A DNA stretch of 64,000 bases, taken from the NCBI RefSeq assembly GCF_964194025.1, contig NC_134479.1, positions 25,358,001 to 25,422,000 of the forward strand. Reading direction: 5' to 3'. A program made the position numbers and the translations under genes. Positions 11,690 through 47,000 of the stretch are shown in pieces. This DNA is from Convolutriloba macropyga. Its lineage: Eukaryota. A model generated the notes under the pieces. The model ran no database searches and was not told the origin of the DNA. It saw nothing but the letters and a program-made list of their open reading frames with translations. Within the stretch, counting starts at the first letter, position 1. Every line of letters starts with the position of its first letter.

Positions 11690-12420
11690 TGTACCATTGG
11701 GTCCTTCTGAAATTGTTGGAAAAAACCCGCCTGTTTGATTCATTCCCTTTTAAGTTTTTTTCAAGACAATTATTAAATGATAAGCCTCTTCCGATGAAAC
11801 TTTTGTCCAGCCATGATGTTTTTGACCTCTCCGAGAAAAATGGTTTTCGTTCTTGAATGTCTTTAAAACTTATAAGTTGGCAAGCTAAGTCCTGTTATTC
11901 TCTTGAAGGCAGGTTTCTTATATGTCAAGATTTGATTGACATACAGTGCTGTTCTGTGACATACAGTGCTGTTCTGTATTCAAGCAATTGTTTTATTGGC
12001 AGTATATAATTATCCAGTTTGATACCAAGTGAAGAATTGTTAAATGGATGAAAGTAACAGGCTTTTACTGCGCAATTGAGTTGCTTTTCTAAGGTTGTAA
12101 GAAAATTTTTGAAATGGAAGAGCAAAACAGCTGAGCACTGGAGATGACTAATTACAAGAGAATTCAGTAGGATTTTGCGCAAATGGTATGGTACTACGCT
12201 TCTGAGGACATAAAGTGTTTTTTATTCCTTACGCCATCTTGCTGAGTATTTGTTTAACTTGTTGTTGGTACAACAACTTTTTGTCCCATATTACTCCGAG
12301 ATATTTTACATTCTTAACTTTTATTATATGGTTGGCAATCTTAATAGACTCTGCTGCGGATGAAGTGCCAAAGACAATGAACTGTTTCTAATTCAGTTTT
12401 AGAGAACGGTATGAAAAATA
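11690..12420 (-). mobile_element. Decayed LINE 3' fragment related to the 4311-5969 element
   Basis: KILLNSLVISHLQ...LTTLEKQLNCAVK aligns with VLLRNAIIISRLH...LTILEKQLYWGIK of the first LINE. Boundaries approximate. Confidence 0.7.
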
Positions 12421-14129
12421 GTCAACAAGAGAGGAAATTGATTTTTCTAAGTAGCAATCAGTAATTTTAGCAGGTTGGGAATAGTTAGCAGGTTGGGAAG
12501 TTGAAAGCTGTTATTTATATTCTTTGCTTTTGGCTTCGCAAGAAACGTATTATGTAAAGGAAACTGTGAGATTTTGTTCAATTTGTCGTGCACGAAACGA
12601 TTTAAAGTATTCAAAAAAGAGCATTTAAAGGTCAACTGTTTAAATGAACTGTAAATGAGCGTCTGTTTATAGCCTGATAAAGTGGTCATTCTATTGCTTT
12701 ACATCTTAGCTGTAACTTAGCTGTGAGACCCCTTCGCAATAATGTAGTACAATACAATATTTAATACAATTTCGAAGGGGCGGAGTGCAAATTTTCTGTA
12801 ATGAAATTATGACCTTACCTAGATCAAAATTTTTGTAGCATTTAATTAAAAAAAACTACCAGTAATGTTTTTCCAGAAAAACAATGAAGACTGGCTTTCA
12901 AAACGTAGCTTCGAGTTTCTGTTTAGTCAAAATTGATAAAACTTTCATGTTAAAGGAAATTGCCATATCCTTTTCGCTTCTTGCAATGACGGGTTTAAAG
13001 TTTCTTTGTCAAAAAGATGAGAATCTCAAAAGAATTTTAAAAATATAATTGTTTGAAAAATTGCGTTTTTCTTCAAACTCGGAAATTTTTTGCTCGGAAA
13101 TATTGATAACTATTATTTGAACAGTGACCATTATAGATAACATAGTTACGTAGACATACGCGGGAAAATGTTTTATTTTCTTTATGAAAATAATATCATT
13201 GTGAAGAGTATATGTTTTAAAGTGAGATCCTTACGCACTGAGTTGTAATATTTAAAGATATCAGCTATTACGGGGAAAAATTTTCAAAAACTTCAATTTT
13301 TGCTTGCTTGTATCTCATAAACCGATGCGGCGATCACAAATTATTTCGTCACAGCTGTATTTTTGTATTATTTTTGAAATATGAAATTGTCCCCCGATCA
13401 ATTTGTTTTGAGATATTGGAGGAAACTGGAACTGTAAGTGACACGGCGGAGTTCATGCGCTTGTCGAGAAAGTACAGAGAAGTGTTAAAGTCGGAGTTTG
13501 TTGATTTCAGTACCCTATTATTTGGCTGCAAAAAAATTGCAAGAATTTGTTTTCGTCTTCGGTAAAGTGAATATAACTTTATCGTGGTCCATTTTTGGTT
13601 TTTCTGTATTATTATGTTGTCCCTGTATTTCGATTGATCCAGGTATGTTTCTCCAAAACATCAGTACCATCGGGAAAAAGTGGTCACTTAACCGTTTGGG
13701 TTAGAAATATTTGTAGAAACGCCTTGTAAGCAATTTGGCGCAGAATTGCTCAAATGCTTCAAACGTTGGGAGTCTCGTTCACTTCACAATTTTTTAATTT
13801 TGGCCACTAGCTTAAGAAGTGATTGAACTCGGAATCACATTTCATGATAAAAACGACAACAGGTCTCCGATAAAGTCTTCCCTTAACTTCATTTCGCAGC
13901 CTTTTAGAAATTCTCTTCTAATGTTGACAAGCATAATGTTCTCGGATTTTGCAGTGACTCTTTGACTTCAATTCTGCGGCTTATGTAATGGATCGCTGGA
14001 TTGTTATAATTTTTTTTTTACTTCAGATCACATTTCGATCAGGCTGCATTAGAATTTTACAAGCGTTTTGCTAGTACGGAATGATCAAATTATTGCTACA
14101 CTTTTTGCGCAAAAATTTGTCGTTTAGTT

Positions 14130-16127
14130 CCAAGTAGATCAAAGAGGCTCGATATTTACACAGGCTACCAAAGAGAATAGAACAGAATTTAAAAATCCAC
14201 ATACTGTTCAAAAAGAGGCTTCTTTAGAGGAACGTTGAGACCTGCCATTAATGAGACTACGAAAAAAATAAAACAAATAACATTAACTACGGTCAAATCT
14301 CTTTAAAAAAACAATTAGTGAAAACTCAAAATAGTATCAGACCAAACCTATATTTTGACCTGTGATTGACCAAAGAAACAGACGGAACCTGTCTTTGATG
14401 AGCACAGGCAAAAAGACAGAAAAATTTGAATATCGATTGTATTTTTTAAAGACCAAATAACATCAAAAGTCATGAAATCATCAGCTTTGAACATAAAAAA
14501 ACTAGATAATTCACATGTAACTGTCTAGGAAGCCATTATTACCTTTTTTTAGAGTAACTAAGTCATAAGAATACACAATAAACACAAATACAAGCAACGT
14601 TAAAAAAAACACAAAAAAATTTTTACAAACAACGTTGAAGCCATTACAATCTTAACCTATTAACTATTTAACGAAGAAATATACATATGTCAAAGTTGGC
14701 CTCATTTGAACATCAAACCAAGTAAGATCAAAGTCATTAAAATCATCGACTGAAGGAGTTAAAAGTTCACTTATACCTTTGTAGAAGGCCATTGAGGACT
14801 GTCATTCTTCATACGACTACAAAAAGAACATGAATTACATTCAAATATCGAAAAAAAAACGAAATTCGCAAGAAATGTGTTCAGGCCGGTAAAGTTTATG
14901 CTATTCGCTGAAATTGTTATACATATTCAACCGGGCCTCCTTTCAACAACGACAGAACTTGTCGTTCGCGTGATATTATAAAGAGACGAAAAAGGGAGCA
15001 CAAATAAAAACATTAATTACGGTCAAGACTTTTAGAAAACTTACACAATCAAAATCATGGAATCATAAGTTAAAACATAAAACCGCCGATAATGAGACTG
15101 CGCTAAAATTTGACAGAGTTAAGGTTTTAAAAGGTTACAATAATAAAAATTCAATCATAATCTTTCAGCGAAAAATGAAATAATCGATTTGCTTAAATTT
15201 TGCGGAATTTGTTGTCGGATCCAATTTAACCATTAGCTTTTGAAATTATGATATTTCGTCGTTGAGCTTTTTGGACGTAAATGGGATATTTCATTAGAAT
15301 CTGTAAATGAAAAAAACTTGTCGGTAATTGGGATGGAAAATATGTCAAAGATAATTTAAAAATTACAATACACCATTACAATTCCGAGCCTTTTTCATGA
15401 ACGAGACCAAAACTCCTCTTGCTACCATTGCGCAGTTGTTAGAAGAACGTAATCGCTCTTGTAATTATTTGCGTAATTATTTGCGAAAGAGATATTTAGG
15501 CAGAAGAAGCTCTAAATATGATGAGACTAATTGATGCTTTTTTAAAAATAAATATTGATTTAAATAGGCGAAAGGTGGGAAAATTGTTAGTGCCAGAAAA
15601 CTTTCATAGGAATAGGAGTCAAAATTAGCCTTCTTATGAGTGATCGAAGATTGTCAGCAGTTTTTTATCTTTACTATTTATTATCGGTGAATGGTGACAA
15701 TGTGGCTAAAGAAGCATATTTGTTGCCATTTTTCATAAAAATAAAAAATGCAGAATTTGAAAATTTTGCCTAGTGTTTAACCCGAAGAGTCGGTTCCAAC
15801 TTTTCAGCAACTTTCATCTTTGAACGTAGAACGAATAACACATTTGATAGAATTTTCAATCGTTTTTAGGCAATATTGATCGAATTTTCTGCAAAATATA
15901 GAGAAACCTGAGCAAGATAACGAAAATGAGCTAATGTTAAAAATTGTTTAAACCTCGATAACACCTTGGGAAATGGTAATTGAAAATTATCTCAATATCT
16001 TATTCTATGTTTTATAAGTTACTCACAACTCTGTACTATGAATGTTTTGATCGGCGAAAACTGGCTGAACAAAAAACCTCAGTATATAGTTAATTTCCCC
16101 CCCACTGAAGTGGGGTTGGAACAACAA
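14130..16127. repeat. Dispersed ~2-kb non-coding repeat (family C, possibly a non-autonomous DNA element)
   Basis: AAGAGGCTCGATA is shared with about 27086 and GGCTACCAAA with about 20303 and 27143. The end motif CCCCACT.AAGTGGG..GGAACAA is shared with about 22556-22580 and, in degenerate form, 44640-44660. Confidence 0.5.
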
Positions 16128-17007
16128 GTAAGGCCTACTTTAATCCGCGATCTTTGTACAGATTGCCAAAAATTGCATGTTATGACAACGCTTTTGGTAT
16201 TTCTGAAGCTTTGTATAAATTTTTTTGGCACTGATATTTTTTATCAAAGACTAGCTAATGAGATGCCAATTATCGGAATTAGTGGAATAACTTACTTTTT
16301 AATTGATATATAGCAGTGAAAGCTGCTTTGTTAATGAAGTATTATGAGTTATGTGATAGGAAAATATTGAAACCTCCCTTTTCGCGTACAATTTAAGAAG
16401 CGTTAAGCAAATTGTATGATAGGAGTCTGAGTCCTTTGAAAAATTAGAGAACTGATTTTTGATTTCAGATGTGCCATTGTCTTTTTTTTACATTTTGCAA
16501 TTGTAATATTAAACTGTTTTTTTTGTAAAGTTGGCGATGCGACTTTTTTCGAAGAAACTGCAGAAAGCGTGCATGAATGCGTGGCCTTATTTTAGATGAT
16601 TTTTCTGTGATTTTTTTTTCTGTTAACTCCTAAAATAGTTCGACTGTTGATGCATGTTAACTATGTTGCGACTTAGCGAGCTCTGGCTGAATTCAAATTC
16701 TTGCCTTTCTTGTTTCATTTAATATTTGTATTGACTGATTTTAAGCTTTGCGTCTTTCCTTGACAGTCATTGGGACTTCACAATTAAATAATGGGTAAAA
16801 TTCGAAAACCTGGACAAATTGATATTCTCGATCTTGGCCGACCTTCTGATGTCCTTGTGGTTTTCATTTTATAATTCAACTTTGTCATCCTCTGCTCGTA
16901 TTGGGTGAGACCTTAAGCAACCATTTTTGTCTATATGAAATTAGGAACGGTTTTCAGATTGTTTTATTCCTTTGTGATTTTGCAGGTTTTGTTTTTTTAG
17001 ATTGTTA

Positions 17008-26000: not shown

Positions 26001-29000
26001 GGTCATCGACAGTTTCCACAAAAAAGTAGTCGCAGGTAAGAAAGGAATTGATTAACATCTTTATTGCATGGTGCATTTATGTAAAGAAAGCTTAGTAGAA
26101 ACATGGTAGAGCGAGGAAAACTAAACAGAATCTGTTGTTCGAAAATATTATCAAAATTGAATCAAAACTGCTTCTTATTGTAAGTTGTTGCTCAGGGGAT
26201 GCTGCACTGTTAGATATCATTGCATTAGTTTCTCGTGAACTTGGTCTTTTAAACAAACGTATTACGTATAATCTACACACGACGTGTTCACTAAATGCTA
26301 ACGACTTACGAGCAAAACTAAATTTGGATTTTCAATCGCAAATTATTTGCTTTAATATAATCCCTAGTGGAATATGGCTGAGAGAAGGAAACGAGACAGA
26401 TTCTTTTTTTCCTCAACTGTCCACATCGTGTGTATTTTAGGCTTAGAAATATATGTTAAAACGAAGACGCCCAAATCTGGACAGTTCCAAGTGAAGGTAA
26501 AGCCTGCGAACCCCAACGTAATGTTCGACTACGAGTTCTCAGAGGAGATATCCGAGGTGCTGAAGAAGATGGATATAGACGTGCACAACTGCAGAGGGGT
26601 CAGAGGTCAACTGGTCGAGATCAATCTGTACAATCAAGAGGACATTCCCAAGGTAAAAAACATTTCATATATTTATCATACATTTCAGTCAAGTTAAGCT
26701 TGCGTATATTGTAAGCAATTGTAACGGTAAAAAGGTTAAAAAGAACAACAATATAGTTTGCGCGCACGATACGCTTGATACTGTGAATGATAGGAAGTTC
26801 TGCTTGTTCTCAGTATACTTCGCTAAAAAGATCAAATTTTGACGAACGAGATAAGCTGTTAAAAGAGTTACCCCAGTGTCGACACCTTAATACTGCTTGA
26901 TGTAATGTTTAACACACTAAGCGTGCAAGTACGAAATGCTGGTTCGAAACCAGCAATATTTCATTTTCACATTATTTGAGTTTGTATAGAATCCCAAAAT
27001 GAACTTCACGAATAATTGAGTTCCTTAATTTAGTAACTATTGAATGCGGAGCAATAATGGGGATTTTAATTATCAATATATGCAAAGAGGCTCGATAATA
27101 TGCGTTTTCACCGACCCCGTTTATCCACATTTTTGGCTAATTGGCTACCAAATGAGGCAGAGATAGAAAACGTTCAAAAACATACATATCGTTTAACAAA
27201 ATCACTAATGGATTAAAAATAATGACACGTTTGATGGCCGATGAAACTTGCTGTTAATAGAACTACTAGAACAGACAATCATAAACATCAAATGACAAAT
27301 ATTAATTACGACCAAAACTCGACGTCTATATTTTAAAAAATAACAAAATTAAACTTCCATCAGATAAAACCTGAACAAAACAGATTGACCTATACTTCAT
27401 TAGAAAAGATATGGGACCTGTCTTCAGTGCGACTGGGTAGCAGGTCGACAATAACAGCAAAAAGTTGCGAAATTAAAAAAGTTCCTGTTTTTGAAAACAA
27501 TTAATTTCAAAGTGATTAAAATCGGTAGATATTAACTGAAATCACTAAAATGTTTATTTATATCTTCATAAGAAACAATTGAGACCATCAATTGTCATTA
27601 TCCAGTGTACGTCAGAAGACTACAATAAGAAGGACAAATACCGTTTAAATTAAAAAGTTTTTTAAACTTTGCGCTAAAATCGCAGTGACGCTGTTAAAAC
27701 CATAAGTTTGTCCTTAAGAACATTAAAATTGTTCAATTGTGGAATTTTTTAAAGCCAATGGGAGCGATCATTAATGTTATAATTTAAAAAGAAAAGGAAA
27801 ATCCTATAAATTTTACAAATATATAAGAATCATAAACAATTTATGAATCTTGTAACAAATTCGAGAAACAAATGGTTGCAACTGAAGCCGTTGAAGATTA
27901 AATTACTGCTAACTGGCAAAGTTCTTATTCCAGAAGACTGTTAATGCCAGCTGGAGTACAACTAGCTCTCTTTCTGAGCATACGAAGAGTATATCCGCAG
28001 TCTTTAGGTGTGTACTTTCAGTAAATTTGAAGAAAATGGGTTTAAAATGCATATTTGGTCCCTTTTTTGACAATGTCTGCATTTTGGAAAGTTTAGCATA
28101 TATTCTAGTAAAAAAACTCGGATCGAACAATTCAGCAACCCTCCTTTATCTTAAAAGATAAAGCCAATAACACTACAGTTAATAATAAATTTTTAGAAAA
28201 AGACGAAAATTGGGACAAATTAAGGAAAACTTGGAACGAAAGCAACGTATTTCGGAGCACAAAACTTAAAATCTTGATGTCTCCCTGTAAAATACAAAAT
28301 TCAAAAAAATGTTTTTCATATTCTGCGCTGGACGAACTTTCTAAGTTCAAATTCTGCGCTGGACCAACTTTCTAAGTAGTGATACCACTCACTACTCTCT
28401 ACTATGATTATATTGATCGGCCAAAATTGACTGAACAAAAAATCCCATTATGACGATGCTAAATTTTGATTGGTTGAAAAAGACTTTTGTAAATTCATAC
28501 AGCACGCATTTATTATCTTGAAATTCATATAGACGATTCTGCTCAGTACAGTTCAGTTGCTTACTAAATTACTTGAATTGAAAACTTGTAGCAGAAAAAG
28601 AGCGTTTTTACCGAACCCGCGCTCCGAATAGCACTTAGCAAAAACTTGCAATTAAAAGCCTTTATTAGAAAGGATATTGCAACGGTAACTCGTCTTCATA
28701 CAATATAGCACTTGGCACTAGCACCTACACAGCCGCCTCTAAAAAGATAGAAAAGGTAGAAGCAAATTAAGAAGAGAGTTAACTCATGGAATTAGCCATT
28801 AACGGAAAAACTTACAATCTTCGAATCATTAGAAAAACAAACACCGGAATTAGCCTTTATTTTATCGCACAAGAAGACAATCAAACCGATATCAAACGGA
28901 TCCGTATTACAAAAAACTCAGAACTTTACAATTTCTCTCAAAACTACCGAATTCGAGAAATTAACCAAACAACAAGCACAAACCAACTTTACCCATTCAA

Positions 29001-32000
29001 AATTATTTGAGCATCAACCTCTTTGTTTTGCTAGCAAAGAGAAAATACAACGCAAGCCACAACAGTACTTCTATGACACTATTGGAAGGCTATCATACTA
29101 GAAACCCGTTCGTATTCTTCAACGACAAAACAATCGACAGAAAAGTAAGTCAAAAACTTGCAGCGAAGAACAAAAAAGACCAACCAAATAGCCTAAACTG
29201 CAAACTCTGTGACACAGCTAAATTGGAGAAACGCACAAATTGCTCTTTCCACAAAAACACTTCAACAACAAACTGACTAAAGGAACATGGCAGATCCAAG
29301 TCCGCCTCACGTACATCTGAAAAGGTTCTCAGGACTACCAAACGAAAACTGGCCTGAATTTGAAGGACTACTGAGAGCAAACTTTGCTGTATCTAGAATT
29401 CCTGAAGCGAACCACCAACGTGCAAGATATCTTCACCTACACTTAGCCGGTAATGCACTCAACTATTACCTTCGACTCGCCGAAAACACAAGAAACGATC
29501 TAGACGATTCGCTTGAACAACTACGCAACCGATATGCAGGAGCAGACCAAAGAAGAAACTTTGAGCTCGATCTGCAATCGAGACAGTTCGATCCAGTGAA
29601 AGAACAACCCGATGACTTCCTCACAGATCTGCAACGCCTCGCCAACCTCGCAATTGTGGACGATCCTGCAGCTCACATAGACCGCACTGACGAAAGAACA
29701 AGACGAATAAGAGAACAATTCATTCAAGGCATGCCCTTCAAGTACAAGAAAGTGTTGCTGAGAGAGAATGACAACATCACTGTAAACGAACTATGCGCTA
29801 TCATCAAACGACGAGTCAGAATTGATCAGATAAACCCCGAACCACAATACACCACGGCATTCAATGCACTAAACGCATCAGGAAATCCTGCTGTGGCCCA
29901 AGCCATAGAAAGCATAATGGCCGCCGGCATAGCATCAATGCAAGTAGCACAGCCACCGCATCAGCGCGTGGAGAGTACTCAGTACCCTAGCTACAGAAGA
30001 GGAAATAACTACAGAGGCTACAACCACAACAGACAAACATACCAGTATAATGGAAACCAAAATGGCCGAGGATACAGTAACAACTACAACAGCAGAGGAC
30101 GTAACCGTGGAAGCTTTCAGAGAGCCCGAGGAAATTATCCGAGAGGAAGGTCAAACTTCCAACGAAACGACCGAAGTAATGGACGTACCGAAAGATCTCC
30201 TACACCAATGAGAACATTTTGCAGAACATGTGCTAGCAATGAGCACACTGCCCGAGATTGTCCAGAACGTCAACCAGCATACCGCGATGGAAACATGCCA
30301 TTCATTCAGCAATCAAAAAACTAAATAACCTGCATGTTTTTCTACAACATATACCAGATAGCATGACAAACTATAGCGAAAATGTATTCATAATACCTCT
30401 GCAGTTCGAAACATTAATAATGAAAGCAGTAGCAGACACTGGAGCATTCAGCAGCGCCATGTCAAAGAAACATTTTGATAAAATAAGCAGAAACCTCTAC
30501 CAAAAACCAGAAAAAACAAATCCTCCTGAAATAAACGTTTCTACAGCTTTCCTACACCAATCACCCATTTTATTTACAGTCCAACTGACATTCAAAATTG
30601 GCCATTTACAATTTGAGGAACAGTTCATGGTGTTTGAAACACTTTCCGCTATCCTTCTTGGCTTTCCCTTCTTTGATAAAAATGAGATTATTATTGATGC
30701 CCACAACAGACTACTCCAAACACCAGAATTTACTTTTCAGCTAAATCTAATGCACATAAAAGGCAACAACAAACAAAAACGTCTCAACAGCCGAAAAAAA
30801 ATCATGCTCAAAACCAAAACAACCTATACGCTATCACCTGGGGAACAAAAATTTCTGGAACTAATCCCATTGGAGGAAACTGATGCACAAGAACAAATTG
30901 GACTCGTAGAGCCTACTGTCAAATTTGAAAAACTGGGCCTTGGTCTAACAAGCACGCTTGACAAACTTACAAAAAACAAAACTACCACCCTACTTGCAAT
31001 CAATACAACAGAAGTTCCACTGCACATTAGACAAGACTCTCCAGTAGCAACATTCGAAATCATCACACCAGAGCAAGCACGCTACCTGATACCACTTGAG
31101 CCAAAACTTCTCCCATCAAGCGACTCAAAGAAAACAATAAAGCAAATAGAAAAATCTATAGAGAGAACAGCAAAAGGCGAAATAAATCATATAACAATAA
31201 CACACGAAAACGGATTCTGGTTTCCGACCCCAGAAACCAATCCCGACACATCGAAGATGAGTGAAGTTGAAAAACGCATATATGACGAACTTGTTAAATT
31301 TAAAAATCTTGAAGCAATTCAACCACTCTCGAAAAACGAAGACAGGAAAACTTTTCTTAACGCATTCAAATGGAGCGACAGCGTACTGTCTGACAAAGAT
31401 AAAGAAAGAACAGAACAGCTTCTAGTCGAATTCAATGACATATTCACAAGGCACCGCCTTGAAATTGGCTACACTCACAAATTCTCAGTCAAATTGACAC
31501 CAGACACAAACAGACCTGTATACTCAAAAACTCAAAGAATTTCAATCCATCTCAAAGACGATTTGCTTATTGAACTAGCCCTTCTCCAGTACTACGGAGT
31601 CATAACAACGCTCCCCTTCAGCCGCTACTCATCTCCAATATTTGCAAAACGGAAGCCAAACGGGAAGCTCAGAATATTAGTAGATCTAAGAAAAATGAAC
31701 CATCTCGTTAGAAACGACTACAACAATAACAACTTCCCGATAGCTACACTAGCAGATGCGGGCACCCACTTAGCCGGCAAGAAACTCTTTTGCAAGATGG
31801 ATGGCAGCCACGGCTACTTCTCTGTACCAATGGCAGATGAACAATCAGTACAGTCACTGGCCTTCAACTTCGCATCGAGAACATATGCTTTTCAAAGACT
31901 AGCCCAAGGACTAAGCAGAAGAGTCAGCGCCTTTAGCTCATTCATGCGTCAAAACCTGGACCCCGTGATAACAGCGGATAAATGCTTTCAGTACGTCGAC

Positions 32001-35000
32001 GACATTGGCATCGGAGCACATGACACAAACGACATGTTGGAAAAACTTCGAGCAGTCTTTACATGCATCCGAGAATCAGGAATGAAACTCGCAACAGACA
32101 AATGCGCATTTGGACTCAGATAAATACAATTCCTTGGTAATACGATAACCTCTGAGGGTCTCACACCAATTACACAGAAGATTACAACCTTTCTGAAAAC
32201 ATTCAGAATGCCGCGAAACCCAAAACAAGTCAAACGAATGATCGGATTTTTTCAATTTTACAAAGCCTTTATCCCTGAACTTGCTGAAAAACTTTTACCG
32301 TTCTATCGTCTACTTAAGAAAGGCACCAATTTCGTGATAGAAGAAGAACACCAAGTTATGCTTGAAAAGCTCACAAATGATCTAAGAACAGCCTGTGACC
32401 TTTCACTCAGATTACCCAAAAAGTTGACCAGCAATATGTAATAATGGCTGATGCATCCTTTTACGCAGCCGGATACGTACTAATTATGGAAGACTACACA
32501 ACAAATGATGATAATCAGGAACTGAAAATTTATGCACCCGTCAGTTTTGGATCTAGAATTTTCCACCCAAACCAACTCAAACTTTCGATATATGCGAAAG
32601 AATTCCTCGCAGTTCACTTTGCCCTAGATACCTTTGCAAATATTATATGGGGATGTAAAAAACCAATTCTCATTTTGACAGACAACAGATCAGTAACCAG
32701 GTTCTTTCAAACAAAAATCATACCGCCAACACTTTGGAATGCTCTCGATCATGTACTCAGCTTCGACATCATACTGGGACACATACCCGGAAAAGCCAAT
32801 TTAGCAGCGGACTATCTGTCGAGAATACACATAAACCCGAAAGAGAAGCTCGATCTACGCATCAACTCACGCATACCGATGCACGAAATCGAAATCAACA
32901 CAGCAGCAGATACACCTGACAATTCAATCAGTTATCTGAGCAGCTCAGAAAATGACGATACCCCCAAAATTATGAAAACATACTTACTTGAGAGAAAACA
33001 AACCAGCGGAGAAGATCCTATGAATGTTCGAGCTGACGTTCAACTGCAAATTCTTTCACCTGCAACGCAACAAATAAACGCCATGCATGAACAAAACCCA
33101 TTGGATGAATTCATCACTCATGGGCACGGACCTTTAGATCTGCGTGCCGAACAACAACAAGACAAAGATATCAAACGGGTACTGCTCTGGTTTGAGAGAG
33201 GTTCACCGACTACAGGACAATATCTATCCAGTGACCTAAAAAAGTATCTCAAGCAGTTCCCAAGACTATCGATAACAGAAGGCGTCCTTCATCGCAAGTT
33301 CTATAACCACACTGGAAACCAATTTATTAAACAATATTGCGTCCCGTCGCACTTACAGAAGGAAGTACTCTACAGAATTCATAACAGTGTTTGGAGTGGG
33401 CACAAAGGAGTCTCACTGACAATAGCAGAATTTAGAAAACGATTTTACTTCCCGAACTTCACTGAACGCCTAACAGAATATATCAGAAACTGTCTCACAT
33501 GCTTGCAAACAAAACCAGCACCAATATCTGCATTGAAACCCCATTACAACCACTTTCGTCTCTGCAGAACTTCCCAGCAGACCTTTTACTAATAGATCTG
33601 GTGGTAAAGATGCACCCTTCTCCCTACACGTACATTCTCTCAGGTATTGACGTGTTCTCGAAGTACCTTTTCGTCACACCTCTTATGTAAGGCGACGCAG
33701 ACATCGTAGCACGAGCCCTTGTCTCAACTTTTCTGAGACACTCCTACATTCCCTCAAGAATCATATGTGACCTTGGAACTGCGTTTACTTCCGAATTAAT
33801 GAGCGAACTAGCAAACCTATTTGAGGTAGAGCTCAAACATTGCACACTGAAACATGCGCAAACCATTGGCTTACTTGAAAGAAACCACGCACCGCTCAAA
33901 CAAATCTTGAGAATTAACGAAAACCAAACTTCCTCGGACTGGCATAGATACGTTGACATTGCAGTATTTATACACAACACAACATTTGCACAAGCTCTTG
34001 GGTGCACGCCATCTGACGTCTTTCATGGCAGAACACCGATAAATCCTTTGGACCTCAGATTTCAGAATACAAAATTATGGGAGTCTCACCCAAAATACGA
34101 CTGCATTAAAGAGCTACAAGACAAAACTACGGAGCTTTTCTCCAGCGTAAAAGACAACCTTATCTCGTCTTATCTGAAATATAAAAAGTACTATGACAGA
34201 AAAGCCAACGCCACACCACTAAAACCCAAATCATACTGCCTGATCCTTGACCCAAAAAGCACAACACAAGTAGCAGTGATCAATAAACAGCAAAGCAGGT
34301 GGATACCATTATACAGAGTAGAAAAATTGCTCATGAATGCAAACTACATTGTACGCAAAACCAACACAAATTACACGCAATGTATCCATCGAATGAGACT
34401 TCGACCTGTGAAACCTCAATATCAAATAGAAGACCTCGAACATGTAGACCCAGAAAACTTTGAAGCAGATCCCACCATACCAGAAGAAGAGAGAGAACCA
34501 CAGCTGTTCGACAACCAAGTCAGGCACCACATTAACGAAGACAACATGCAGCTACCCAGTATCTGCATTGAAACCCCCATTACAACCACTTTCGTCTCTG
34601 CAAAACTTCCCAGCAGACCTTTTACTAATAGATCTGGTGGAAAAGATGCACCCTTCTCCCTACACGTACATTCTCTCAGGTATTGACGTGTTCTCGAAGT
34701 ACCTTTTCGCCACACCTCTTATGAAAGGCGACGCAGACATCGTAGCACGAGCCCTTGTCTCAATTTTTCTGAGACACTCCTACATTCCCTCAAGAATCAT
34801 ATGTGACCTTGGAACTGCGTTTACATCCGAATTAATGAGCGAACTAGCAAACCTATTGGAGGTAGAGCTCAAACATTGCACACTGAAACATGCGCAAACC
34901 ATTGGCTTACTTGAAAGAAACCACGCACCGCTCAAACAAATCTTGAGAATTAACGAAAACCAAACTTCCTCGGACTGGCATAGATACGTTGACATTGCAG

Positions 35001-38000
35001 TATTTATACACAACACAACATTTGCACAAGCTCTTGGGTGCACGCCATCTGACGTCTTTCATGGCAGAACACCGATAAATCCTTTGGACCTCAGATTTCA
35101 GAATACAAAATTATGGGAGTCTCACCCAAAATACGACTGCATTAAAGAGCTACAAGAGAACCACAGCTGTTCGACAACCAAGTCAGGCACCACATTAACG
35201 AAGACAACATGCAGCTACCCATAACAACACCAGATGTCCAGTCAGTTTCTTTCAACTCAAACATCCAAACAGCAAATTTTTCTTCTGAAGACCCGCCAAT
35301 ACAATTTCATGATATGACACACGAACCGACGTTTGACCAAGATGCATTCTTCTTGGAAGGCTCAGTTCCAAGCGCAAACACGCAAGAAACACCAGAATCA
35401 ATTGATACAGGAGACTACGTCTTCTCAAACAACTCAAACTTCTTACCGTCCGACAGTCGTTTTGGCTCAAATCGACGATACAACCTTCGCAGAAATGATC
35501 ATCTGGCATTGGCCCGAGAACTCGCTATATAACCTCTTGCAACCATCAGAAAAAGCAAAGGAAGAACAGGTCAAAGTAATAACTTACTTCCCACTTGACC
35601 ACATCCCAGACCCAAACCTGACAATTGATACAACAGAAACTGATCACGATGAGAGCATTGCAGACTCACAAGCAACAAGCTCACAGTCGCGAAACCAGAG
35701 TCTCAATGACTTCACGTTCGATTCACCTGAAAATCTTGGCGATCTATTTGATGACGTTAATAGCCCCGTCTACACGCCCCCAATATTAGACACTACAGGC
35801 GAAACCTTTTACCGGACCAACTCGATCAACGATATTTACAACAATACAACCTCAAGCAATGATGTCCAACAACCGAGATCCGACGAGAACAATGAGCACT
35901 CCCTTATAGGAGGCACCATTTCACAAATTGAAAATAACGAAAGCAATAGTGCTATTGCTCAACACGACAACCCAAGAACATCTTCACCACTTCCTCAAAG
36001 AGTATCCAACAGAGAACTAGCGGACCTTGGCCCAACGCTTCAAAACAGACGGAGAATTGTTCCGCTAACACTTCACCGTCGGGAGATCAACGGAAACCTT
36101 CACCAAACTTTTGGCTTCGAAGATGACAGCCAATAGGAATTGAGCACCAATTCTCTATTATACATACACATTAGATACGTCACCAACCAATGAAAACACT
36201 CCAAAAAAAAATCCTAATTTAAAAGGAAAAAAGACACAGCTCAAATCATTTTCCAAAATTTTGTACCTCAAAATCGGTCGCACAAAGACTCTGATTCAAT
36301 TTCACAAACAAGCCTAGTTAGCAAAATGCTCAATATCGTACTATTTTTACTACAACTTTTACCATTGATGAAAACGAACCAACCATCGGTGGCAACAAAA
36401 GATGGAGTATTGTTCAACCTTCACCAGAAAATTCTATTGACAGAAAAATTTGTCAAAACTGAAATCCTGGTCCCCTACCCAATATATAACAAAACAGTGG
36501 AAGACAAACTGATCAACCTGACAAAAGAGATAGACAAAATGTGGACTTCAGAAAATCATGGATGCCCATTGAACTTCACAAATATGACTGACTCGACAGC
36601 AGGCCTCCACTGGATAGCGCAACAAACAATGATAGAAAACCAACAGGCCCAACACGACATTGTAAACCTCAAATTGGAAATGAGCACACTACTAAGAGCA
36701 AACAGTCAAACTTCTACAACACTGCAAAGACAACCCCGCGGTGCGACTGCCGCAGCAGCAGCAGCCGCAGTGCTGGGAATTGGAATAGGAACAGGCGACA
36801 AAATACTATGCTTCATCAAATCAGTGTTTGGAGGATGCGACGAAAGAGTGGCTAGAAACCAGAAAAACATCAGACAAGCAATGGCTTATCTTCAATACCT
36901 AACCGATCATGTCAAACAAATAACAATCCAAAATAATGAAAAATTCTATGTTGTATCAGGTGAACTGAAAGCCATCAAAGAAGCCCAGAACGAAATAATA
37001 GAGACACAAAACAGGAACTGGGAACTTGCTGAAGGACAATTCAAGGCGTTACGACAAAACGTGCACCACATGAGAAACTGCATCCAATACTTATACGTAA
37101 GAGAACAAATCAATCAACATAGTCTTGTACTTAGCAATATTTTTCAAGCAATACTTGCTAACATCAAAACATACCGATCGGCCCTTTATACGTTTCGAAT
37201 CAACATACTGAATGCCTTGACGCCTCTCATGAATCAACTATTACCAATGTCATGAGTCCCAAGGGAGCAGTTGCATGAAATTCTTACGATTGTTCATTTG
37301 CAACAAAATGGACAACAGGATCGATTTGCTCTAGCCGTACCAATTCAAGAGATTCTCTCGTACTATGAAACGAAATTAGTCACACAAGTCGAGGCAATTG
37401 ACGCAGGTCTTATACTTACACTTGCAATTCCAATGGCTTCAAAAAGTACAGTTGTGAACGTATTGCATGCCATTCCGATCCCAATGCCGGACGGGGATAC
37501 GGGTAAGGCTTTAGTTTGGTGACTTGAAGCCAAATACATGGCCCTCTCAGACGACGGAGAAGAACTAGCGTTTATCGATGAAGACGAGCTCGAAAATTGT
37601 ATCGGATCCCAAAAATACGCAATATGCACCAAAGCCATTCCAACAGAACAGACTTATCGGTCCTGTATGGCTACTTTACTTTACCACGATGACGAGCTAC
37701 TTGCATTGCAACGCTGTCAACTGGATGTAGTAGAATTGCCGTTGACTGAAAAAGCACGCAATCTCGGCTTCGGTCGTTGGTTAATAACATCGTCCAAAGA
37801 CGATTATACACTCATCGAAAGCGCTGGTAATGGCAGCAATCCATTGGCAAGAATTGAGCATCCTGGGTGCAGAGTGTGTATCATCACACTGGGATGTGGA
37901 AAACAGCTTAGAGGACCAAATGTTCATCTTCGCTCAGACCTCACTGCTTGTGACACAGTACCGGCAATACGGTTAGATTTTCAATTACCAGATCCAATAA

Positions 38001-41000
38001 GTACACTCTTCAAACTACTGCCCCCATTGGATGAACTACCAAACTTCTCATCAAGATCTGAGGCACAAATTCATATTCTTCAGCAAATTCAACCAGAGTT
38101 TAAACAAATGGAAACACGACGAACAAATAGCAAATCAATAGAACGAATGGCCGAACCACTTTTAGAAAGAATAAGAGCATTCAAGCCCGAACTCGAACAC
38201 CGATTCGAACAGTACATACCATGGAAAATGTCTCTTCTTTTCGGATTTTTATCCTTCTTGATTAGCGTATTACTACATCTAACTTATTTGCATCTTTTAC
38301 ACAAATGGGCAAAACTTCACCGACGTTTCCCTTTCCGAATAACACACGAAGGACGGCGAATAAAAACAAAACCAGTACAAGTTGTCGCATTAAATGACTA
38401 TGATTACCTACAAGAACATCCAGAACATCCCCTGCACAAATGCTCACTAGTACTACCACTCGAAATTAAAACTGAGTTCGAAAACCAAAACGAAGAAAAC
38501 ATAAATAAACCTCGCACTCCTTACACATTCCTAAGAGACTACATCAGGAGACTAAAACGTAACGAAGAACCAACTATCAAAATTGATCATGTCAACAGGC
38601 CTGCCGCACCGAGTCAGCCCATCTATACACATATACCGGAACAACCACCGGTATCCCATTACGGAGCGTACCCTCTCAGAACAATCAATACAGGAAACGT
38701 TTAAAAAAAACCTGACCGGGACTCGAACCCTCAACTTCAGCATGAGAGTGCAGCGCGCTACCAACTGCGCTAAGTGGGACGGCCGCGTGGTCCGTAAAAA
38801 CAGCTTATAAATAAAAAAAAAAGAAAAAAAAGTTAAATTTTTTTACCCTTCCCCTCTTCTCTTCCCCCTTACCCTAGCTTACCCTTACACCCCTTTGCCC
38901 TTTCCCAGATTTTCCCACATTATGGAAGCACCAGGAACCCGCCGGGATTCGAACCCGGAACCCCAGCTCAACGGCCAGAGATACTAACCACTGAACTAAG
39001 TCACTTGTTAAAAGTTATCAATTACATTCACTTCTACTCTGCCGCAAATTAGAAATTTTGTGTTAGCAGTGAGCAAGGAAAACAAAACTTAAAAATAAAA
39101 ATTAAAAAAAAATTTATTAATTAACAACATTTATAATAGCCCTAAATAAACCAGAGAGACCTATCCTCCATCTGGAAAGTACCTACCATTATATTTGCGA
39201 AAACTTAATTCAAAATTTTGATATTACTCGTGTATTAAACCGAAATTTTCATTACTTGCAATTATTCTTTGAGAAAAATCAACAAGGAAAAATTACAGAG
39301 CAATTCCCCTTAAACCTCCGTTGTTAAAGGCGGGGATTTGCTCCCTACCTTTTTATCCAGCGACGAATTTATTTTTAAAAAAGAATTTATACTGACGCAC
39401 TAAACAACGGAGTAATAAGATGCGACTCCTAAAGGAAACTTATCAATTATCTGTCAAAGCGAGAAAAAGAAGGAAATCCATTAACCCGGAAGGCGAACTG
39501 TCTATCAATCACAATGACAGCCTATAATGGAACACTAATCAATCCAACCAGGGATAATTCCCCACAATCCCAATTAATCAAAATGTCAAATTTCCCCCAC
39601 TTCCCCCGCAACACTATCAATCATTCAAACTACTTTCTGCCTGCTAACTACCAGCAACACTCTTCATTGCTAACTGTTCATTCTCTCAACCTATTACAAT
39701 TTCTTCGCGGATAGAAACTTGGAAATTATTTCAAACAACTTAAACAATTTTCCTACAACTAAAACTTTACCTTTTGCACTATTTCAAACATTTTATAATG
39801 AATCCAGTATATCACTTCAGAATTAAAGTTGAGCCGCGCATTAACACTACATTCAACGGCCAGCCAGCTTATATTACTGAATACAGCATTGCCTTTTTTA
39901 CAGATCGTGAAGCAATAATTAGTATTAACATGCAACAGGACAATATTGTCAACAATATTTATTCAATTTCTTTTATCCCCCTTACAGTGAATGAGACATC
40001 AGCCGTATGGCAAACAATTCTACAATGCATACAATCGGGAAATAATTATAATAATGGGAATTTCTATCTTAACTCAGAAGGAGAACCAGCTGCAGTAGAA
40101 CCATCGCAACCAACCATTTCTGAAAGTCCCGACAGCCCTGACCCTACATCAGACCACAATTCAACTGAATTAAATAATATTCCAATTTCTCCCCATCACC
40201 CATTCCATTCTCAGATGACTCTATGTAAATTTCCTCAAATATTTGCATTTCTTTTCCATTAAAAATCTTATCTCATGTCTTATCCACCAACCCCAACTTT
40301 CACCACAATTGACCAATCAGAAGACACCATTCCTTACATCTCTCCAATTCCAACCCAATTTCCACTTTATGCTTACTTTCTCACTGATTTTGATATAAAA
40401 CTTGCAGTCTTTTCTGAATACTGCATAAATAATCAAGACAAAAAAATCACTTTGGAACCAGATCATCCAAATTTTCTTACCTTTTTGAATTTCTTACAAA
40501 ACACCAAAGAATTTTTAGAAGGCGAATTTGACCTGTAATTTCTTTTTTTTAAACCATATTTACTTTTTCTTTCCCTGATATTTCCAAATCTCAAAACCTA
40601 GCAATTCTGAATTTTCTTAAAAATCATGACAAGCAACTAGGACCAAATCCGAAATTACGTCGGCCCAGAAGACATCGCCCCAAAATTACACACGAACCAC
40701 AACATCAACGTTTGCGTGAAAGTAGGAATCCAATACAGGGAATGTTTTTGCAATGAATATGTCATATTACAAAATAGAACCATCGTGATCTGGGCACACT
40801 CCCATACAGGCCTTCTCACGAAAAAATGTTTTTTCTACACAACCTGGGAATACTACACCTACATTTACCACTTCATTACTTCATCCCAAGGTACCCAACT
40901 CACCCACCAATTCTGGGATTTTATTCAAATGGACAATGACGACCCCATTGAGTTTGACCCTGTTGGCATCCGTGTATTCACTTAGACTTGCATAAACTTC

Positions 41001-44000
41001 TTTAATTTTTTTTATTATTCGAAATATTTTTTTTAAATCTTTTCTCTCATGAGTCGCAATTAATTTAATGTAGTACTTATTTTATAAACACCGCAAATTA
41101 TTCAAATGTAACGCCTCCTCTTCTTATTTTTAATTTCTTACCAATTTATTTTTTTTACTTCTGACCAAAAAAAAAATTACTCGTGAGTCATAACTCGTGA
41201 GCACTATTATTGACCAATCTATTCCCAACCTTTATCAACAAAAATTAACATCCCACCTTGTTATCACTTCGAAGGGCACGCGATTGAAAGTCAAAATGTT
41301 AATTGCTTACACTACATACGACTGTGCAAAGTAACGACCCAAAAAACTCACGAAACATCATTTTTTTTCCAGAACAACACCAAACTAACACAGACAGGAC
41401 CCTTACCGATTGCCCAGTATCAGCAAAATAATCCTTTCAAAATACGTTGAAAGGGCACGGGCTTGAAATAATAAAACCTCAAAAAAAGAAAAAAACCTGG
41501 CAGTATAGTTCCAACCCTAAAAAAAATGTAAATTAAAGTCGAACAACTCACTTATTCCATTGAAGGATCCTTTGGAGGAAGAAACGAATACACAATATTC
41601 TCGTTCGATTGCGTTTTCGTTTCCCGTTTCCCACCCCATTTTCTTCGATTACCTCGTTTGTTATTTGTTTTCAAAATTAGACCACTATTAGCGAAACTTT
41701 GCACATGCTCAGTCACATCACTAGCACCACCAGTTGATACTTCTCTTTCTTTCGCCCAGTCTAACACTGCCTTTTTTTTATTTGATATTACAATTCTTTT
41801 TACCGCACCTTTACGCACACCATAAGCAAACGATCCCAAAGTCCGATCAACAACAACTTGATTCGATTGATCAGGCGCCTCCCAGCCCGTCACTAACGAC
41901 AAACCTTTTGTAAAAGTTAAAACAGCATGCGCACACAACGAAGGCTGGCACAACACATTATCTTTCGTCGGAATGAAAAACCAAACATCCTTTCCCAAAC
42001 CACTTGCAGAAGGACCCCTCTTAATTAAATCCATAAAATATTGCGGAGTACCCATAACATTATTAAAATCCCTTGATGTCTGATAACTTCCACAAATCAG
42101 AAACAATTTCTCACCACACGGCGTTTTCGAAACACTATCATTACCCCCAATCTCAACATGTGCCGCCGTCCACCACTCATTCCATTGTACCATGGCATCT
42201 CTCCTTACACCAGTAAAACCATCAGGCAAAACACCACTCATCAAACCATCCACACAAAACGTCAAACCTATTGAATTACACAAACCAGAATACGACCCAA
42301 CTTCTTGATACAACCTGCTATCACCAATCTCCAACTTTAATTTACTAACATAATTATACACATCGCCCTGATCTCTACAGCCCCGGAACCCTTCTGCTAA
42401 ACTTTCTTGTAATCCCACAATTTCTTCATTATTTATTGCCAATGGTACCTTTGGCCAACCATTCTCTCCAACCAGTCCCCCTCTAATTTCTTACCAATTT
42501 ATTTTTTTTACTTCTGACCAAAAAAAATTACTCGTGAGTCATAACTCGTGAGCACTATTATTGACCAATCTATTCCCAACCTTTATCAACAAAAATTAAC
42601 ATCCCACCTTGTTATCACTTCGAAGGGCACGCGATTGAAAGTCAAAATGTTAATTGCCTTTCAATCGCGTGCCCTTCAATTGCCTTTCAATTGCCTTTCA
42701 ATCGACTGTTTCCACTTCTTTCCATCCGAGACTTACTAATTTTTTCCGATCGTAGTACTGATGTTTGAACTCCTTCATTTCGATTAGCAAATCTTGTCTG
42801 CCTCGTGTCGTTCTAAACACGATAATTCTGTAACGATAAACACGATAAACACAAAAAAAATTTAATGCTAGCCTATGAAATCCTAAATTGTTATAAGTAA
42901 TTAACGAACCTTTTAGTGTCCATACTTTGATAAAATACAATATCCCGTCTCTTCGTTATTACAATCGTTTTTGCAAAGCTTCGATAAAAGATCCAACAGT
43001 CGATGAATAACGCCGCTATTAAAGTTTGACCTCTTCGCAGTAAACGTATTCTGAATAACTTTATCACTAGAGCAGTCAATCACACTGTTCTCAATTTACT
43101 TTCCTCCAAAACTTCCATTAGTGACTGTCAATTACTGCCATACCGAGGGAATTACTTCCGAAAACTCCATTAGTGACTGTCAATTACTGCCATGTCGAGG
43201 GATTTACTTCATTACTTTACTCCCCTCACAACGTGGAGCAAATGGAACTGCCACACTTGACAGATCACTACTACATTAATCTTCCTGGGAAAAATGCAAA
43301 TAAACCCGAAGAGATTATCAAACAACTGTCTCACTGATACAAAATCTAATGAACGGCCTCCCACTCTAACCTTACTCAGAAGAAAAAGAAACTATTCATC
43401 ACTTTATCTATTCAGTTCCACTTTTATTTTTAACAGCGAAGAAAACGGCAGCGAAGTAAACAAAACAAATGAACTATCAGCCTGACCCCCCACAACTCTT
43501 CTCCTTCGACGGGCGGCTCGCCCTGCTAATAAAAATGGGCATACTAGAGACGCCCATTTACCGCACTTACGTGCAAATTACATACGTTTGGCAGGGCGAG
43601 CCCACGAACCTGGACGTACTGAGAAAAACAGCCCTCATACCAAGACGAAGCAGACTTATGCCTCACTTAAGGAGAGTTGTGGGCGGTCAGGAGGCCCTAA
43701 ATCTACAAATCGAGCCTCACCACTACGTAATCAGACATTTTTAATCTATTTTTGTACAAAACTGCACGCCTTTATTTTTCTAATGCATGCTTACTACGCC
43801 TGCCACGACCAACACGAACATCATTGAAAGACTTGGCAAGAATCGAGGACACAAACCACCAATCCCTCCATCACCAACTGGACAAATATGGCTCCGATAT
43901 GGCACGAAACTCACATCCACTTGGCCAACGCGGAATGTAGTATTCTTTTCACAACATACAGCAGTCGCGTTCCCCAGCTCAATTTCTTCGCATACATGAG

Positions 44001-47000
44001 ATGAGAAAACAAAAGGCCACAAAAGAGCAAACAGAAAGTAAACTTTCAGCATTTTGATCTGGAATACTCAATAAAAACTTAGAACAAACCACTATTGATG
44101 TTGCTTTCCATTTATACTTAATTAACCCAGTAAATCCCTTGACTTTGGCAATACCACTAATCAAGACCCACTTGGCACAGCACACTAGGCAACCCTGTTT
44201 ATAATCATAAGATTAAAGGTTCGAAACCCATCGCCTCCGCTTTTTCTGAAGAGCCGTAATGTGACGATGCTAAATTTTGATTGGTTGAAAAAGACTTTTG
44301 TAAATTCATACAGCACGCATTTATTATCTTGAAATTCATATAGACGATTCTGCTCAGTACAGTTCAGTTGCTTACTAAATTACTTGAATTGAAAACTTGT
44401 AGCAGAAAAAGAGCGTTTTTACTGAACCCGCGCTCCGAATAGCACTTAGCAAAAACTTGCTCTTAAAAGCCTTTATTAGAAAGGATATTGCAACGGTAAC
44501 TCGTCTTCATACAATATAGCACTTGGCACTAGCACCTACACAGCCGCCTCTAAAAAGATAGAAAAGGTAGAAGCAAATTAAGAAGAGAGTTATCATACCC
44601 ATTTTAGCATATAGCCCCCCCCCCCCCCCCCACCGCCCCTCCAAAGTTGGTCCGAACAATTAATGGACGTCCGTCCAAGATGTGGACAGTTTTCTGAGAT
44701 ATTAAATGGAGTGTTACTTGGAGAGGCAGATTTGACCTGTTTGACGGCGGACTTTCAGACGGTATTTCATTTAATAATTTCTGTATATTGCCATGGAGTC
44801 ATGCGCGCCTACGTATAAAAATGGTGAATTTTCAAATATTTTATAAGAATTTGGGCATATTATAAGATTCTATTATATCATTTGTATCTTAATGATTCTT
44901 CAGATCGAAAAACTCAATTATGTATTTTTATCTGACAACTTTTTCAAACCTAAAACGAACTTTTTCTGGACTGTTTAGGTCCTGGAAAAATTCAACAACA
45001 CGAACTTCGGATTCATCGATATTGTTGCCGAATCACACGTTGAGTCGGAGGCAGACGACAAGACGGCTTCGTCATCTTCGGCAACTTCAGAATCGACTGA
45101 GAGTCAAAATGGAGAGATAAAAACTGAGACAGAAGATTCCACTGAGACGTCAGGTATTGGCACTTTTTAATACTCATCTTGCAGTATCAAATTTAGTTTT
45201 AGTTGTTAAATATAACCTCCTGTCTTATATCTGAGCGCAATCATGATTACACGCGAAAGATTTCAAAGAAAAAAAGTTGAAGAAAGATTCCAAAAAAGCG
45301 GGCCGCATTGGAGCCTATAGCTGCGCAGTTGGAAACGTAGACCACATAGAAGAATTTTTGACCAACTATTCTATGCCCAACTTTCTATCCGTGTCTGTGC
45401 CAACTAACCTCGAGACAATGCATGCCATTTAATAAGTTAATTATTATGAACGTGTGTTTTGAAATTTGTTTTGAATAGTTATTGTGTTCAGGTGATGCCT
45501 CCAGCACAACTGGCAGTGATAAAAGCAGTCAGGAATCTGAGAATCTCAGTTGCGAGCCGTTCGTGTTTGCGGCAATGAAGACCAGCTCAGATTCATTCAC
45601 TCCAAAAAATATGAAAATTTTATGCAAGGTAATAAAAAGACTCAATGTTCTACCGCACTAGTAAAGTCCAATAAGTATTAATCTAACTATTCAACCTTCG
45701 GTGAATAATCGGTAGAATTTGTTGCTGAATTTTAATTTTGGGTCCTAGTGAACAAGGATAATTGGTTCTAATTATTTGGTTATATTATTTGTCTGATAAG
45801 GCTGCAATTAAGAGTAGCACGTTTTATATTGAAGAAAGATCAAATTTTGAATGTTGTGAAGGTTTATTATTATGTGATGATGATTTTTTGGTCATGAAAT
45901 CAGCAGCTCAATAGAACGCCATTTCGTTACAGGCTTTCGAGCAGGAATCTATAGAAGTTTCTAGAAGCAACACAGCATCTGCTGGGAAATTCGCATACTT
46001 TTTTGTCAAATCCTGGGATGACGTGGAGAAATTCCTGAACAAATATGGAAGCAAGTTAATTAACAACATGATGATCAATTTTGAAAAGGGGTCAAGGAAG
46101 AGCCCATTTATGCAGCAGAATTCGGCAGAACAGCAAAACAGGTAAGACTAAATTTGTTTCGCCAGTCGAGAAAAATAGGACTATATTGAAATTCGGCGAT
46201 CGATTTGACTACTTGAGAGCCGTTCAAGGCGGCTCAAAACGCGCGGTTCTCAGAAGGAAACGAGCAAAAATTAATTGATGACACAAACTTTAATCACATG
46301 GCTGACTCTAGTACTTTGCAAACCTAATTATTGCTGAATGGTAATCAAAATTGGTTTAGTAGTCCGAGAACTGTTTTGTAAACGTAATTTTGCGAATTGA
46401 TAAGCTCACAGTTAAAAAATAAAAAGTTCTCAATTGGCAGAAAAAGCCAACAGTTTTTGTGTTTAAAAGCAGCAAAGCGATAACTGGGGTTATTATTGGC
46501 CTTACAATTAGGGTGGTTTTTCTTACAATTAGGTTGCTGCCTTCTTCCGACTCGAAGATGAGTGTCGGTTTTCTTGAGATTTTTTTAAACCGGAAGTAAT
46601 ATTTGCTCACACGGCGTTTTGAACTAAAAGCGAAAATAAGTAAAATTGCAGTGTCGACCAATTTTTTCTAAGCCGGAATTTTTTCTTAATCATGTCTGGC
46701 GTTCAGTGAATGACCTATTGACTTTGAAAAGTGTTTTTCAGAGAATTGCGCATATAGATAACCGTTTTAGCCGTTTTTTTGTCCTTTTTTGCTAACTTTT
46801 TTGCTTTGTTTGGTGTTTTGTAGATGCTGATAGTTAATTTTCGATTGATGCTGCATTCAAATGTAACCATCTGAAATTAATATCACAGTATTTTTAAGAA
46901 TCTAATAAAGCGTTTCAACTGCAAAATGGCACATATTTCTCAATTACATTTAAATTTTGTTTTTGTTTATTTTTTTGGACATTTGAGAGGTCTGTTTTTA

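Follow-up and report, generated by a model that had tools for sequence, protein, structure and literature searches.

Hosts silence retroelements largely by histone and DNA methylation, and to our knowledge only very few counter-measures encoded by transposons themselves have been described, namely the VANC proteins of DNA transposons in plants and a demethylase of the AlkB type, acting on RNA, that is carried by Gypsy elements of orchids. Here we analyse a 16.1-kb long terminal repeat (LTR) retroelement of Convolutriloba macropyga that carries an accessory gene whose product is very probably of the JmjC fold, in antisense orientation to gag and pol and between an envelope-like (env-like) gene and the 3' LTR. 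The element occupies positions 28451-44592, bounded by 331-bp LTRs, of a stretch of 64,000 nucleotides (assembly GCF_964194025.1, contig NC_134479.1, positions 25,358,001 to 25,422,000 of the forward strand), to which we refer as the window and from whose first letter positions are counted.

Several described systems come close to single aspects of this element. Ty3/gypsy elements carrying an env gene have been found across metazoans (termed “errantiviruses” by Chary and Hayashi, who use the name broadly), and an F-type env has been described for them (PMC13524379). Additional open reading frames (ORFs) lying antisense between pol and the 3' LTR are known from the plant elements Retand, Grande and RIRE2, and antisense genes are known from deltaretroviruses (PMC11963269). 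In Phalaenopsis orchids, Ty3/Gypsy elements contain an AlkB-type N6-methyladenosine (m6A) RNA demethylase as an additional ORF, which has been proposed to counter host surveillance (PMC9289625). Finally, anti-silencing of the own transposon family has been demonstrated for VANC of the Arabidopsis VANDAL (Mutator) transposons (PMC5735166, PMC10398659).

Like the metazoan errantiviruses, the window element combines LTRs, gag, a pol with protease, reverse transcriptase (RT), RNase H and integrase, and an env modelled as F-type. It is set apart from them by its length, including 5.5 kb that separate env from the 3' LTR, and by its antisense gene, as their survey mentions no JmjC, demethylase or antisense gene (PMC13524379). 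With Retand, Grande and RIRE2 it shares a long region from pol to the 3' LTR whose antisense ORF is conserved and which tends to form tandem repeats, whereas the ORFs described there encode TRP28 or other non-enzymatic domains of unknown function, belong to elements of plant or vertebrate hosts and in no case specify a JmjC enzyme (PMC11963269). The likeness to the orchid AlkB is that one lineage of large Gypsy elements has acquired, and fixed, an extra ORF for an Fe(II)/2-oxoglutarate (2OG) oxygenase; the orchid case differs in its plant host, in the AlkB instead of the JmjC fold, and in an RNA substrate that has been shown in vitro (PMC9289625). It is moreover described as a recent acquisition (PMC9289625), in contrast to the JmjC gene, which spans lineages with pol proteins 44-72% identical to that of L001, the sister copy of the window element. 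VANC would be matched in being a transposon-encoded factor that undoes epigenetic silencing of its own family, a role that we infer here and that is demonstrated for VANC, but VANC belongs to a DNA transposon and binds DNA sequence-specifically, and is not an enzyme of the JmjC fold.

Env-bearing Ty3/gypsy elements of metazoans, antisense ORFs in LTR elements, transposon anti-silencing factors and a 2OG oxygenase as cargo of plant Gypsy elements are thus already known. What is new is a retroelement accessory gene with a kind of cargo for which we found no precedent and with a protein family that is nameless in the sources searched. The first-pass annotation of the window, which had been made from the DNA letters, knew of no such cargo in an env-bearing animal Gypsy element, and our full-text search, which had partial coverage, likewise returned no published report of it, a result that amounts to absence of evidence only.

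The antisense gene had been described as an intronless minus-strand ORF located between env and the 3' LTR. Location and reading frame are as described, the gene lying opposite to gag-pol (Table 1), but the frame is not one continuous open ORF in this copy, as it contains five in-frame stops. Compared with P0001, an intact relative of 369 codons, the window copy carries a single in-frame insertion of about 160 nt that brings in the five stops and is in part a perfect duplicate of a 138-nt stretch lying past the 3' end of the gene, a stretch that is present once only at the sister locus L001. A reading of the extra stretch as an intron was rejected because six sister genes, all of them intact and without introns, lack it, and because it partly duplicates sequence beyond the 3' end. 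The 3' three quarters of the window copy are still one open stretch that includes the whole catalytic core, and the window's antisense gene is a pseudogene with its catalytic-type residues intact. All motifs that had been read from it are found in this frame, i.e. Thr-x2-His-x-Glu-x-Gly-Gly and, counted from its first His, a Lys at a distance of 17 residues and His-Ala-Val-Leu-Thr at a distance of 77, with the two His codons exactly at 42160-42158 and 41929-41927, followed by a basic C-terminal tail.

The sister copies found in public assemblies have the gene as an intact ORF of 369-371 codons without introns, and the gene measures about 355-370 codons across the family. The start proposed for the window copy, at 42778, is the first ATG of the gene in the family (in each of the six sister genes it is codon 15 of the ORF as called), and an ATG is found within the first 15 codons in 12 of 12 genes examined. 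The public gene calls of L001 and L008-L011 begin at a GTG, with the first ATG 14 codons further in, because a prokaryotic gene caller was applied to metagenome assemblies; the database proteins of this family are therefore probably 14 residues too long at the N-terminus.

Taken singly, the window protein matched nothing in Pfam or the PDB. A word-based search yielded 15 relatives, all of them in unannotated ENA assemblies, and an exhaustive profile search yielded 177 clusters of relatives at E ≤ 0.001, on account of which the ORF must be regarded as more than a product of chance; none of the ten clusters looked up had a name or accession. A profile of nine sequences still found nothing in the PDB, and JmjC structures were reached only with a profile of 90 sequences (alignment A2), which also underlies the structure model and the conservation counts given below. 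With this profile the PDB search returned nine hits, all nine to JmjC enzymes of the KDM7 clade (PHF8, ceKDM7A, PHF2, KDM7A; best E 0.016). The alignment of A2 with PHF8 crosses the catalytic core and pairs Thr, His, Asp/Glu, Lys and His, its stretch from the first His to the Lys being free of gaps, and the KDM2/KDM7-type catalytic layout that had been recognised in the window, with Thr, His, Glu, Lys and His and an equal His-to-Lys spacing of 17 residues, is thereby supported. Among the 90 relatives, Thr164 is conserved in 89%, His167 in 92%, Glu169 in 88% (plus Asp in 3.5%), Lys184 in 92% and His244 in 93%, and these five catalytic-type columns are all among the 12 most conserved of a family with a pairwise identity of only 20-30%.

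The domain check that had been suggested for the protein gave a divided result, in that the profile does match KDM7-clade structures while the Pfam threshold for JmjC is not reached. Weak Pfam matches across the 90 members were most often to JmjC_2 (five members) and JmjC (four members), with best sub-threshold E-values of 0.021 and 0.0098, respectively. A Pfam scan of the window protein, P0001 and ten distant full-length members gave no hit at all, including none to PHD, CXXC or F-box/LRR modules, in line with the proposed minimal enzyme without reader domains.

The structure prediction agrees with the profile search. The AlphaFold2 model calculated from A2 (predicted local distance difference test (pLDDT) 89.4, predicted template modelling score (pTM) 0.86) contains eight consecutive beta-strands, at residues 148-263, around the motif residues. 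Searched against the PDB with Foldseek, the model gave 407 matches at E ≤ 0.001, the best 50 of which are all JmjC-fold enzymes. The best 22 comprise ceKDM7A (9e-10), PHF2, KDM7A, KDM2A, JMJD6 and PHF8, with a probability of 1.00 throughout, and the best 13 are KDM7, PHF2, KDM7A or KDM2A; TYW5 and KDM5B are among the further matches. Against BFVD, cupin/JmjC proteins of giant viruses rank first. The double-stranded beta-helix expected from the motif has thus been obtained in a confident model with JmjC enzymes as its best matches.

The profile hits, the fold, the conserved residues and the lack of any other domain therefore argue for a very divergent, minimal JmjC oxygenase that is probably nearest to the KDM2/7 clade. 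We are highly confident that the gene is a JmjC-fold accessory gene of the element, and consider it probable that the product is a catalytically active oxygenase. KDM7, PHF8 and PHF2 together with KDM2 (JHDM1) provide the best profile and fold matches, aligning in Thr, His, acidic residue, Lys and distal His, and the likeness extends to the His-to-Lys spacing and to the double-stranded beta-helix core with its flanking helices. Unlike these enzymes, the antisense gene product has Glu in place of the PHF8 Asp, lacks a PHD, CXXC or F-box reader module, measures about 360 residues in total, is encoded by a retroelement instead of a host gene and remains sub-threshold for Pfam JmjC. With an identity of only 10-13%, the assignment to KDM2/7 is tentative, KDM7, PHF2, KDM7A and KDM2A being the closest matches and JMJD6 and TYW5 the next. 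The protein would found a new and highly divergent family of JmjC proteins not covered by the domain libraries now in use.

To judge whether the gene belongs to the element, we compared its placement across loci. At L001-L006 the gene lies opposite to RT, RNase H and integrase genes, and at the sister copies L009 and L010 it is again antisense to pol. Its exact position varies: at L001 and L002 it follows env, as in the window, at L003 and L004 it directly follows integrase, ahead of an env-sized ORF, at L005 it comes after an ORF with a Macro domain, and at L006 it is antisense to the integrase gene. For L011, no Pfam family is recorded for the neighbouring genes. The identity to L001 falls in parallel for pol (72, 48, 44 and 47%) and for the JmjC protein (51, 28, 28 and 25%), and this parallel divergence is consistent with a single old acquisition, after which the accessory gene co-diverged with pol at a higher rate. 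The expectation that homologues would lie inside lineages of such elements holds for L001-L006, L009 and L010, but does not hold for L007 and L008, which have no pol beside the gene. The L007 gene (10001-11077) is located between direct repeats of 5,065 bp (2264-7328 and 11807-16861, 99% identical) that carry PIF1-helicase fragments, so that the gene may here be part of a mobile or repeated unit of a different type. L008 contains two intact genes of the antisense family in tandem, 3,362 bp apart. The Macro domain at L005, a diverged element of the same clade, (12436-13203, minus strand; 25.8 bits against a cut-off of 22) is situated between integrase and the antisense JmjC gene, and its ORF may encode a second accessory enzyme.

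Between lineages, the proportions of synonymous and non-synonymous differences are 0.72-0.81 and 0.33-0.54, respectively, and the ORFs remain open. Because synonymous sites are saturated at this distance and the ratio is unusable, the ratio of non-synonymous to synonymous substitution rates (dN/dS) was determined for copies within the window's family, using seven copies, in which the open part of the window gene is joined by six intact genes that come from five loci; the two L008 copies in this set are not independent. Pairs at dS 0.08-0.12 have a dN/dS of 0.18-0.38, whereas the closest pairs (dS ≤ 0.02) have a dN/dS of 0.8-1.4. Variants common to at least two copies divide into 20 synonymous and 15 non-synonymous, and singletons into 12 and 27, compared with a ratio of non-synonymous to synonymous sites of 3.7 that would be expected under neutrality. 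Such a pattern of constraint along the replicating lineage and decay after insertion is typical of transposons, and the dN/dS below 1 of the more diverged pairs within the family indicates purifying selection on the antisense gene.

The base composition connects the gene to its element. Counted on the sense strand of the element, third positions of the antisense gene consist of A 0.42, C 0.29, G 0.04 and T 0.25, near to those of pol (A/C/G/T 0.41/0.27/0.12/0.20) and env (0.42/0.23/0.12/0.23) and unlike those of the host's OATP gene. The plus-strand bias towards A and C that the first-pass annotation had noticed is accordingly common to gene and element, which supports its suggestion of a long residence; in L003 and L004 the agreement is less close. 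The whole element is strongly strand-asymmetric, with just 11-18% of G on the plus strand, above all at 41552-42442. A mutation bias linked to replication or editing may be raised as a type of cause for this depletion of G.

With this fold, conserved metal- and 2OG-type residues, antisense placement in diverged lineages, purifying selection and a composition equilibrated with that of the element, the best explanation overall appears to be an envelope-bearing Ty3/gypsy element carrying a selected JmjC eraser against silencing, a reading that we hold with moderate confidence. The family keeps an intronless accessory gene, antisense between env and the 3' LTR, probably for a minimal JmjC-fold Fe(II)/2OG oxygenase with a basic tail. 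This gene would be transcribed on its own from the region adjoining the 3' LTR, in which case its signals would not disturb the genomic RNA; the antisense genes of Retand, Grande and deltaretroviruses are discussed in the same terms of signal non-interference (PMC11963269). The protein would then enter the nucleus and remove repressive lysine methylation of the H3K9 or H3K27 type (lysine 9 or 27 of histone H3) from chromatin, and this demethylation would counter heterochromatic silencing of the element's copies. The window copy, being broken, cannot make the protein and could gain only in trans from intact copies.

The more specific parts of this proposal are correspondingly less secure. That the enzyme is a histone demethylase used for anti-silencing is a tentative suggestion, and it is slightly more tentative still that a whole clade has long carried an antisense-expressed minimal JmjC demethylase stripping H3K9/H3K27-type methylation in opposition to silencing by PIWI-interacting RNAs (piRNAs) or heterochromatin. 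If true, the gene would be the first transposon-encoded histone demethylase, and env-bearing retroelements of animals would possess, as parasites, a chromatin-modifying enzyme of their own in the conflict over silencing. It adds an unreported gene to the recently described and widespread env-carrying Ty3/gypsy elements of metazoans, and makes the question of whether a retroelement erases its own silencing marks approachable via transcripts, chromatin maps and structures.

A number of observations weigh against an eraser of histone marks that serves the element. No member of the family reaches the Pfam gathering score for JmjC (PF02373) or JmjC_2 (PF08007), the E-value of the profile against the PDB is no better than 0.016, the identity to solved JmjC proteins is 10-13%, and the TM-scores of the Foldseek matches amount to 0.35-0.45 only. 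The metal motif is His-x-Glu, whereas the aligned PHF8 of the KDM7 clade has Asp. A reader domain by which the enzyme could be directed to methylated histone tails, or to copies of its own element, is lacking, and the hydroxylases JMJD6 and TYW5 come within about three orders of magnitude of KDM7 in the Foldseek search, so that the substrate may be of another type. L007 is a distant homologue without any pol match, and none of the genes called at L008 is a pol. In the window the gene is broken, and the changes that separate it from L001 (two synonymous and ten non-synonymous) look neutral. Lastly, the promoter, the transcript and the nuclear import that the antisense gene would need are inferred.

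The alternative that survives best accepts an active JmjC-fold oxygenase but gives it a substrate other than histone lysine methylation. The enzyme may hydroxylate or demethylate a host or element protein in the manner of JMJD6, or a nucleic acid in the manner of TYW5, or it may be a functional parallel to the orchid AlkB m6A demethylase and help the element by a route other than the de-repression of chromatin. JMJD6 (2.7e-7) and TYW5 (8.8e-7) follow close behind KDM7 in the Foldseek ranking, histone-reader domains were not found by Pfam, and a 2OG oxygenase with RNA demethylase activity is documented as cargo of an orchid Gypsy element (PMC9289625). The PDB profile hits, however, are all KDM7-clade demethylases or their relative PHF2 with no hydroxylase among them, and KDM7, PHF2, KDM7A and KDM2A lead the fold matches, AlkB-type folds ranking far lower, for which reason we consider a non-histone substrate unlikely, if well worth keeping in mind.

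A different possibility is that silencing is opposed without catalysis and that the JmjC fold serves as a binding scaffold only. Epe1 of Schizosaccharomyces pombe, a JmjC-domain protein and putative demethylase opposing heterochromatin, sets the precedent, since it is reported to act non-enzymatically (PMC7192584). Epe1 is a host gene, however, and was matched by none of our searches. For all the divergence of the family, the columns of the metal- and 2OG-type residues of the antisense gene product rank with the most conserved, and their retention is not what one would expect of a scaffold alone, which makes a non-catalytic role improbable.

Slightly less probable again is a mere passenger gene of no use to the element, whether a host gene recently transduced or a host gene around which elements happened to insert. 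The distant homologue at L007, without pol and between two 5-kb direct repeats, and the two tandem copies at L008, with no pol called beside them, would suit such a passenger. It is contradicted by the same antisense placement at L001-L006, L009 and L010 with a divergence that tracks pol, by purifying selection and by synonymous sites bearing the strand bias of the element and not that of the host; in addition, no named cellular homologue surfaced from the 177 clusters, of which ten were looked up. Chance occurrence of the ORF and its motifs in antisense retroelement sequence, for which only the missing Pfam or PDB match of the single sequence could be adduced, is already refuted by the 177 homologous clusters, the confident fold, the conserved residues and a dN/dS below 1, and has next to no credibility left.

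The element that carries the proposed eraser gene is, in the window, a defective copy of an envelope-bearing Ty3/gypsy retroelement. The features are listed in Table 1.

Table 1. Parts of the LTR retroelement in the Convolutriloba macropyga window.
Feature	Position	Strand	Remarks
5' LTR	28451..28781	+	331 bp; 99.1% identical to the 3' LTR (blastn)
gag-like ORF, 345 aa	29287..30324	+	open; C-terminal zf-CCHC with E 0.0039, below the Pfam cut-off
pol, broken	30258..36136	+	Pfam: RVT_1, RT_RNaseH, Integrase_H2C2, rve; Ty3/gypsy order
env-like gene (putative F-type fusion glycoprotein), broken	36326..38704	+	model of a relative; match to L010
two small sense ORFs	39774-40262 and 40275-40538	+	matched by the 151-aa and 102-aa ORFs of L001, 96% and 84% identity
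antisense JmjC-like gene, first ATG to stop, broken here	41552..42778	-	tblastn with P0001, one frame throughout
non-coding stretch, antisense gene start to 3' LTR	42779..44261	.	candidate site of an antisense promoter
3' LTR	44262..44592	+	331 bp; 96.4% identical to the LTR of L001

Within pol, Pfam matches along 30258-35224 are found in the order protease, RT, RNase H, integrase. Compared with the single long pol ORF of L001, the window copy breaks up into six matched pieces with five frame changes and two in-frame stops, and it also holds one internal tandem duplication of about 1 kb. The env-like gene matches the intact env ORF of L010 with 96% identity over 789 codons, in one frame with two in-frame stops. 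Its protein has one transmembrane-like segment and found no match in a Pfam scan. Sixteen relatives were found and used for a model of the relative P0204 (pLDDT 65.8 overall, about 80-88 in the core), and the best 50 PDB matches of this model are all F proteins of paramyxoviruses or pneumoviruses (best E 5e-6). With moderate confidence, the env-like gene can therefore be predicted to encode a fusion glycoprotein of the paramyxovirus F type.

A Pfam scan of the first of the two small sense ORFs, at 39774-40262, found no family. The stretch of about 1.5 kb that separates the antisense gene from the 3' LTR contains no ORF with a family match, and L001 shares this layout, its LTR being about 1.4 kb away from the start of the antisense gene. 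In the bases flanking both LTRs, no clean target-site duplication is readable. The family of the element is prone to local tandem duplications, which occur in pol and in the antisense gene of the window as well as at L008 and L011; at L011, ORFs of 102 aa and 76 aa are repeated about 4 kb apart.

Outside the element, the window contains the host's organic-anion transporter gene OATP (SLCO), in two long ORFs at 8920-11162 on the plus strand, which by itself marks the window as animal DNA, and an ORF of 400 aa at 4767-5969 on the minus strand, which matches RVT_1 with an E-value of 2.6e-39 and presumably belongs to another retroelement.

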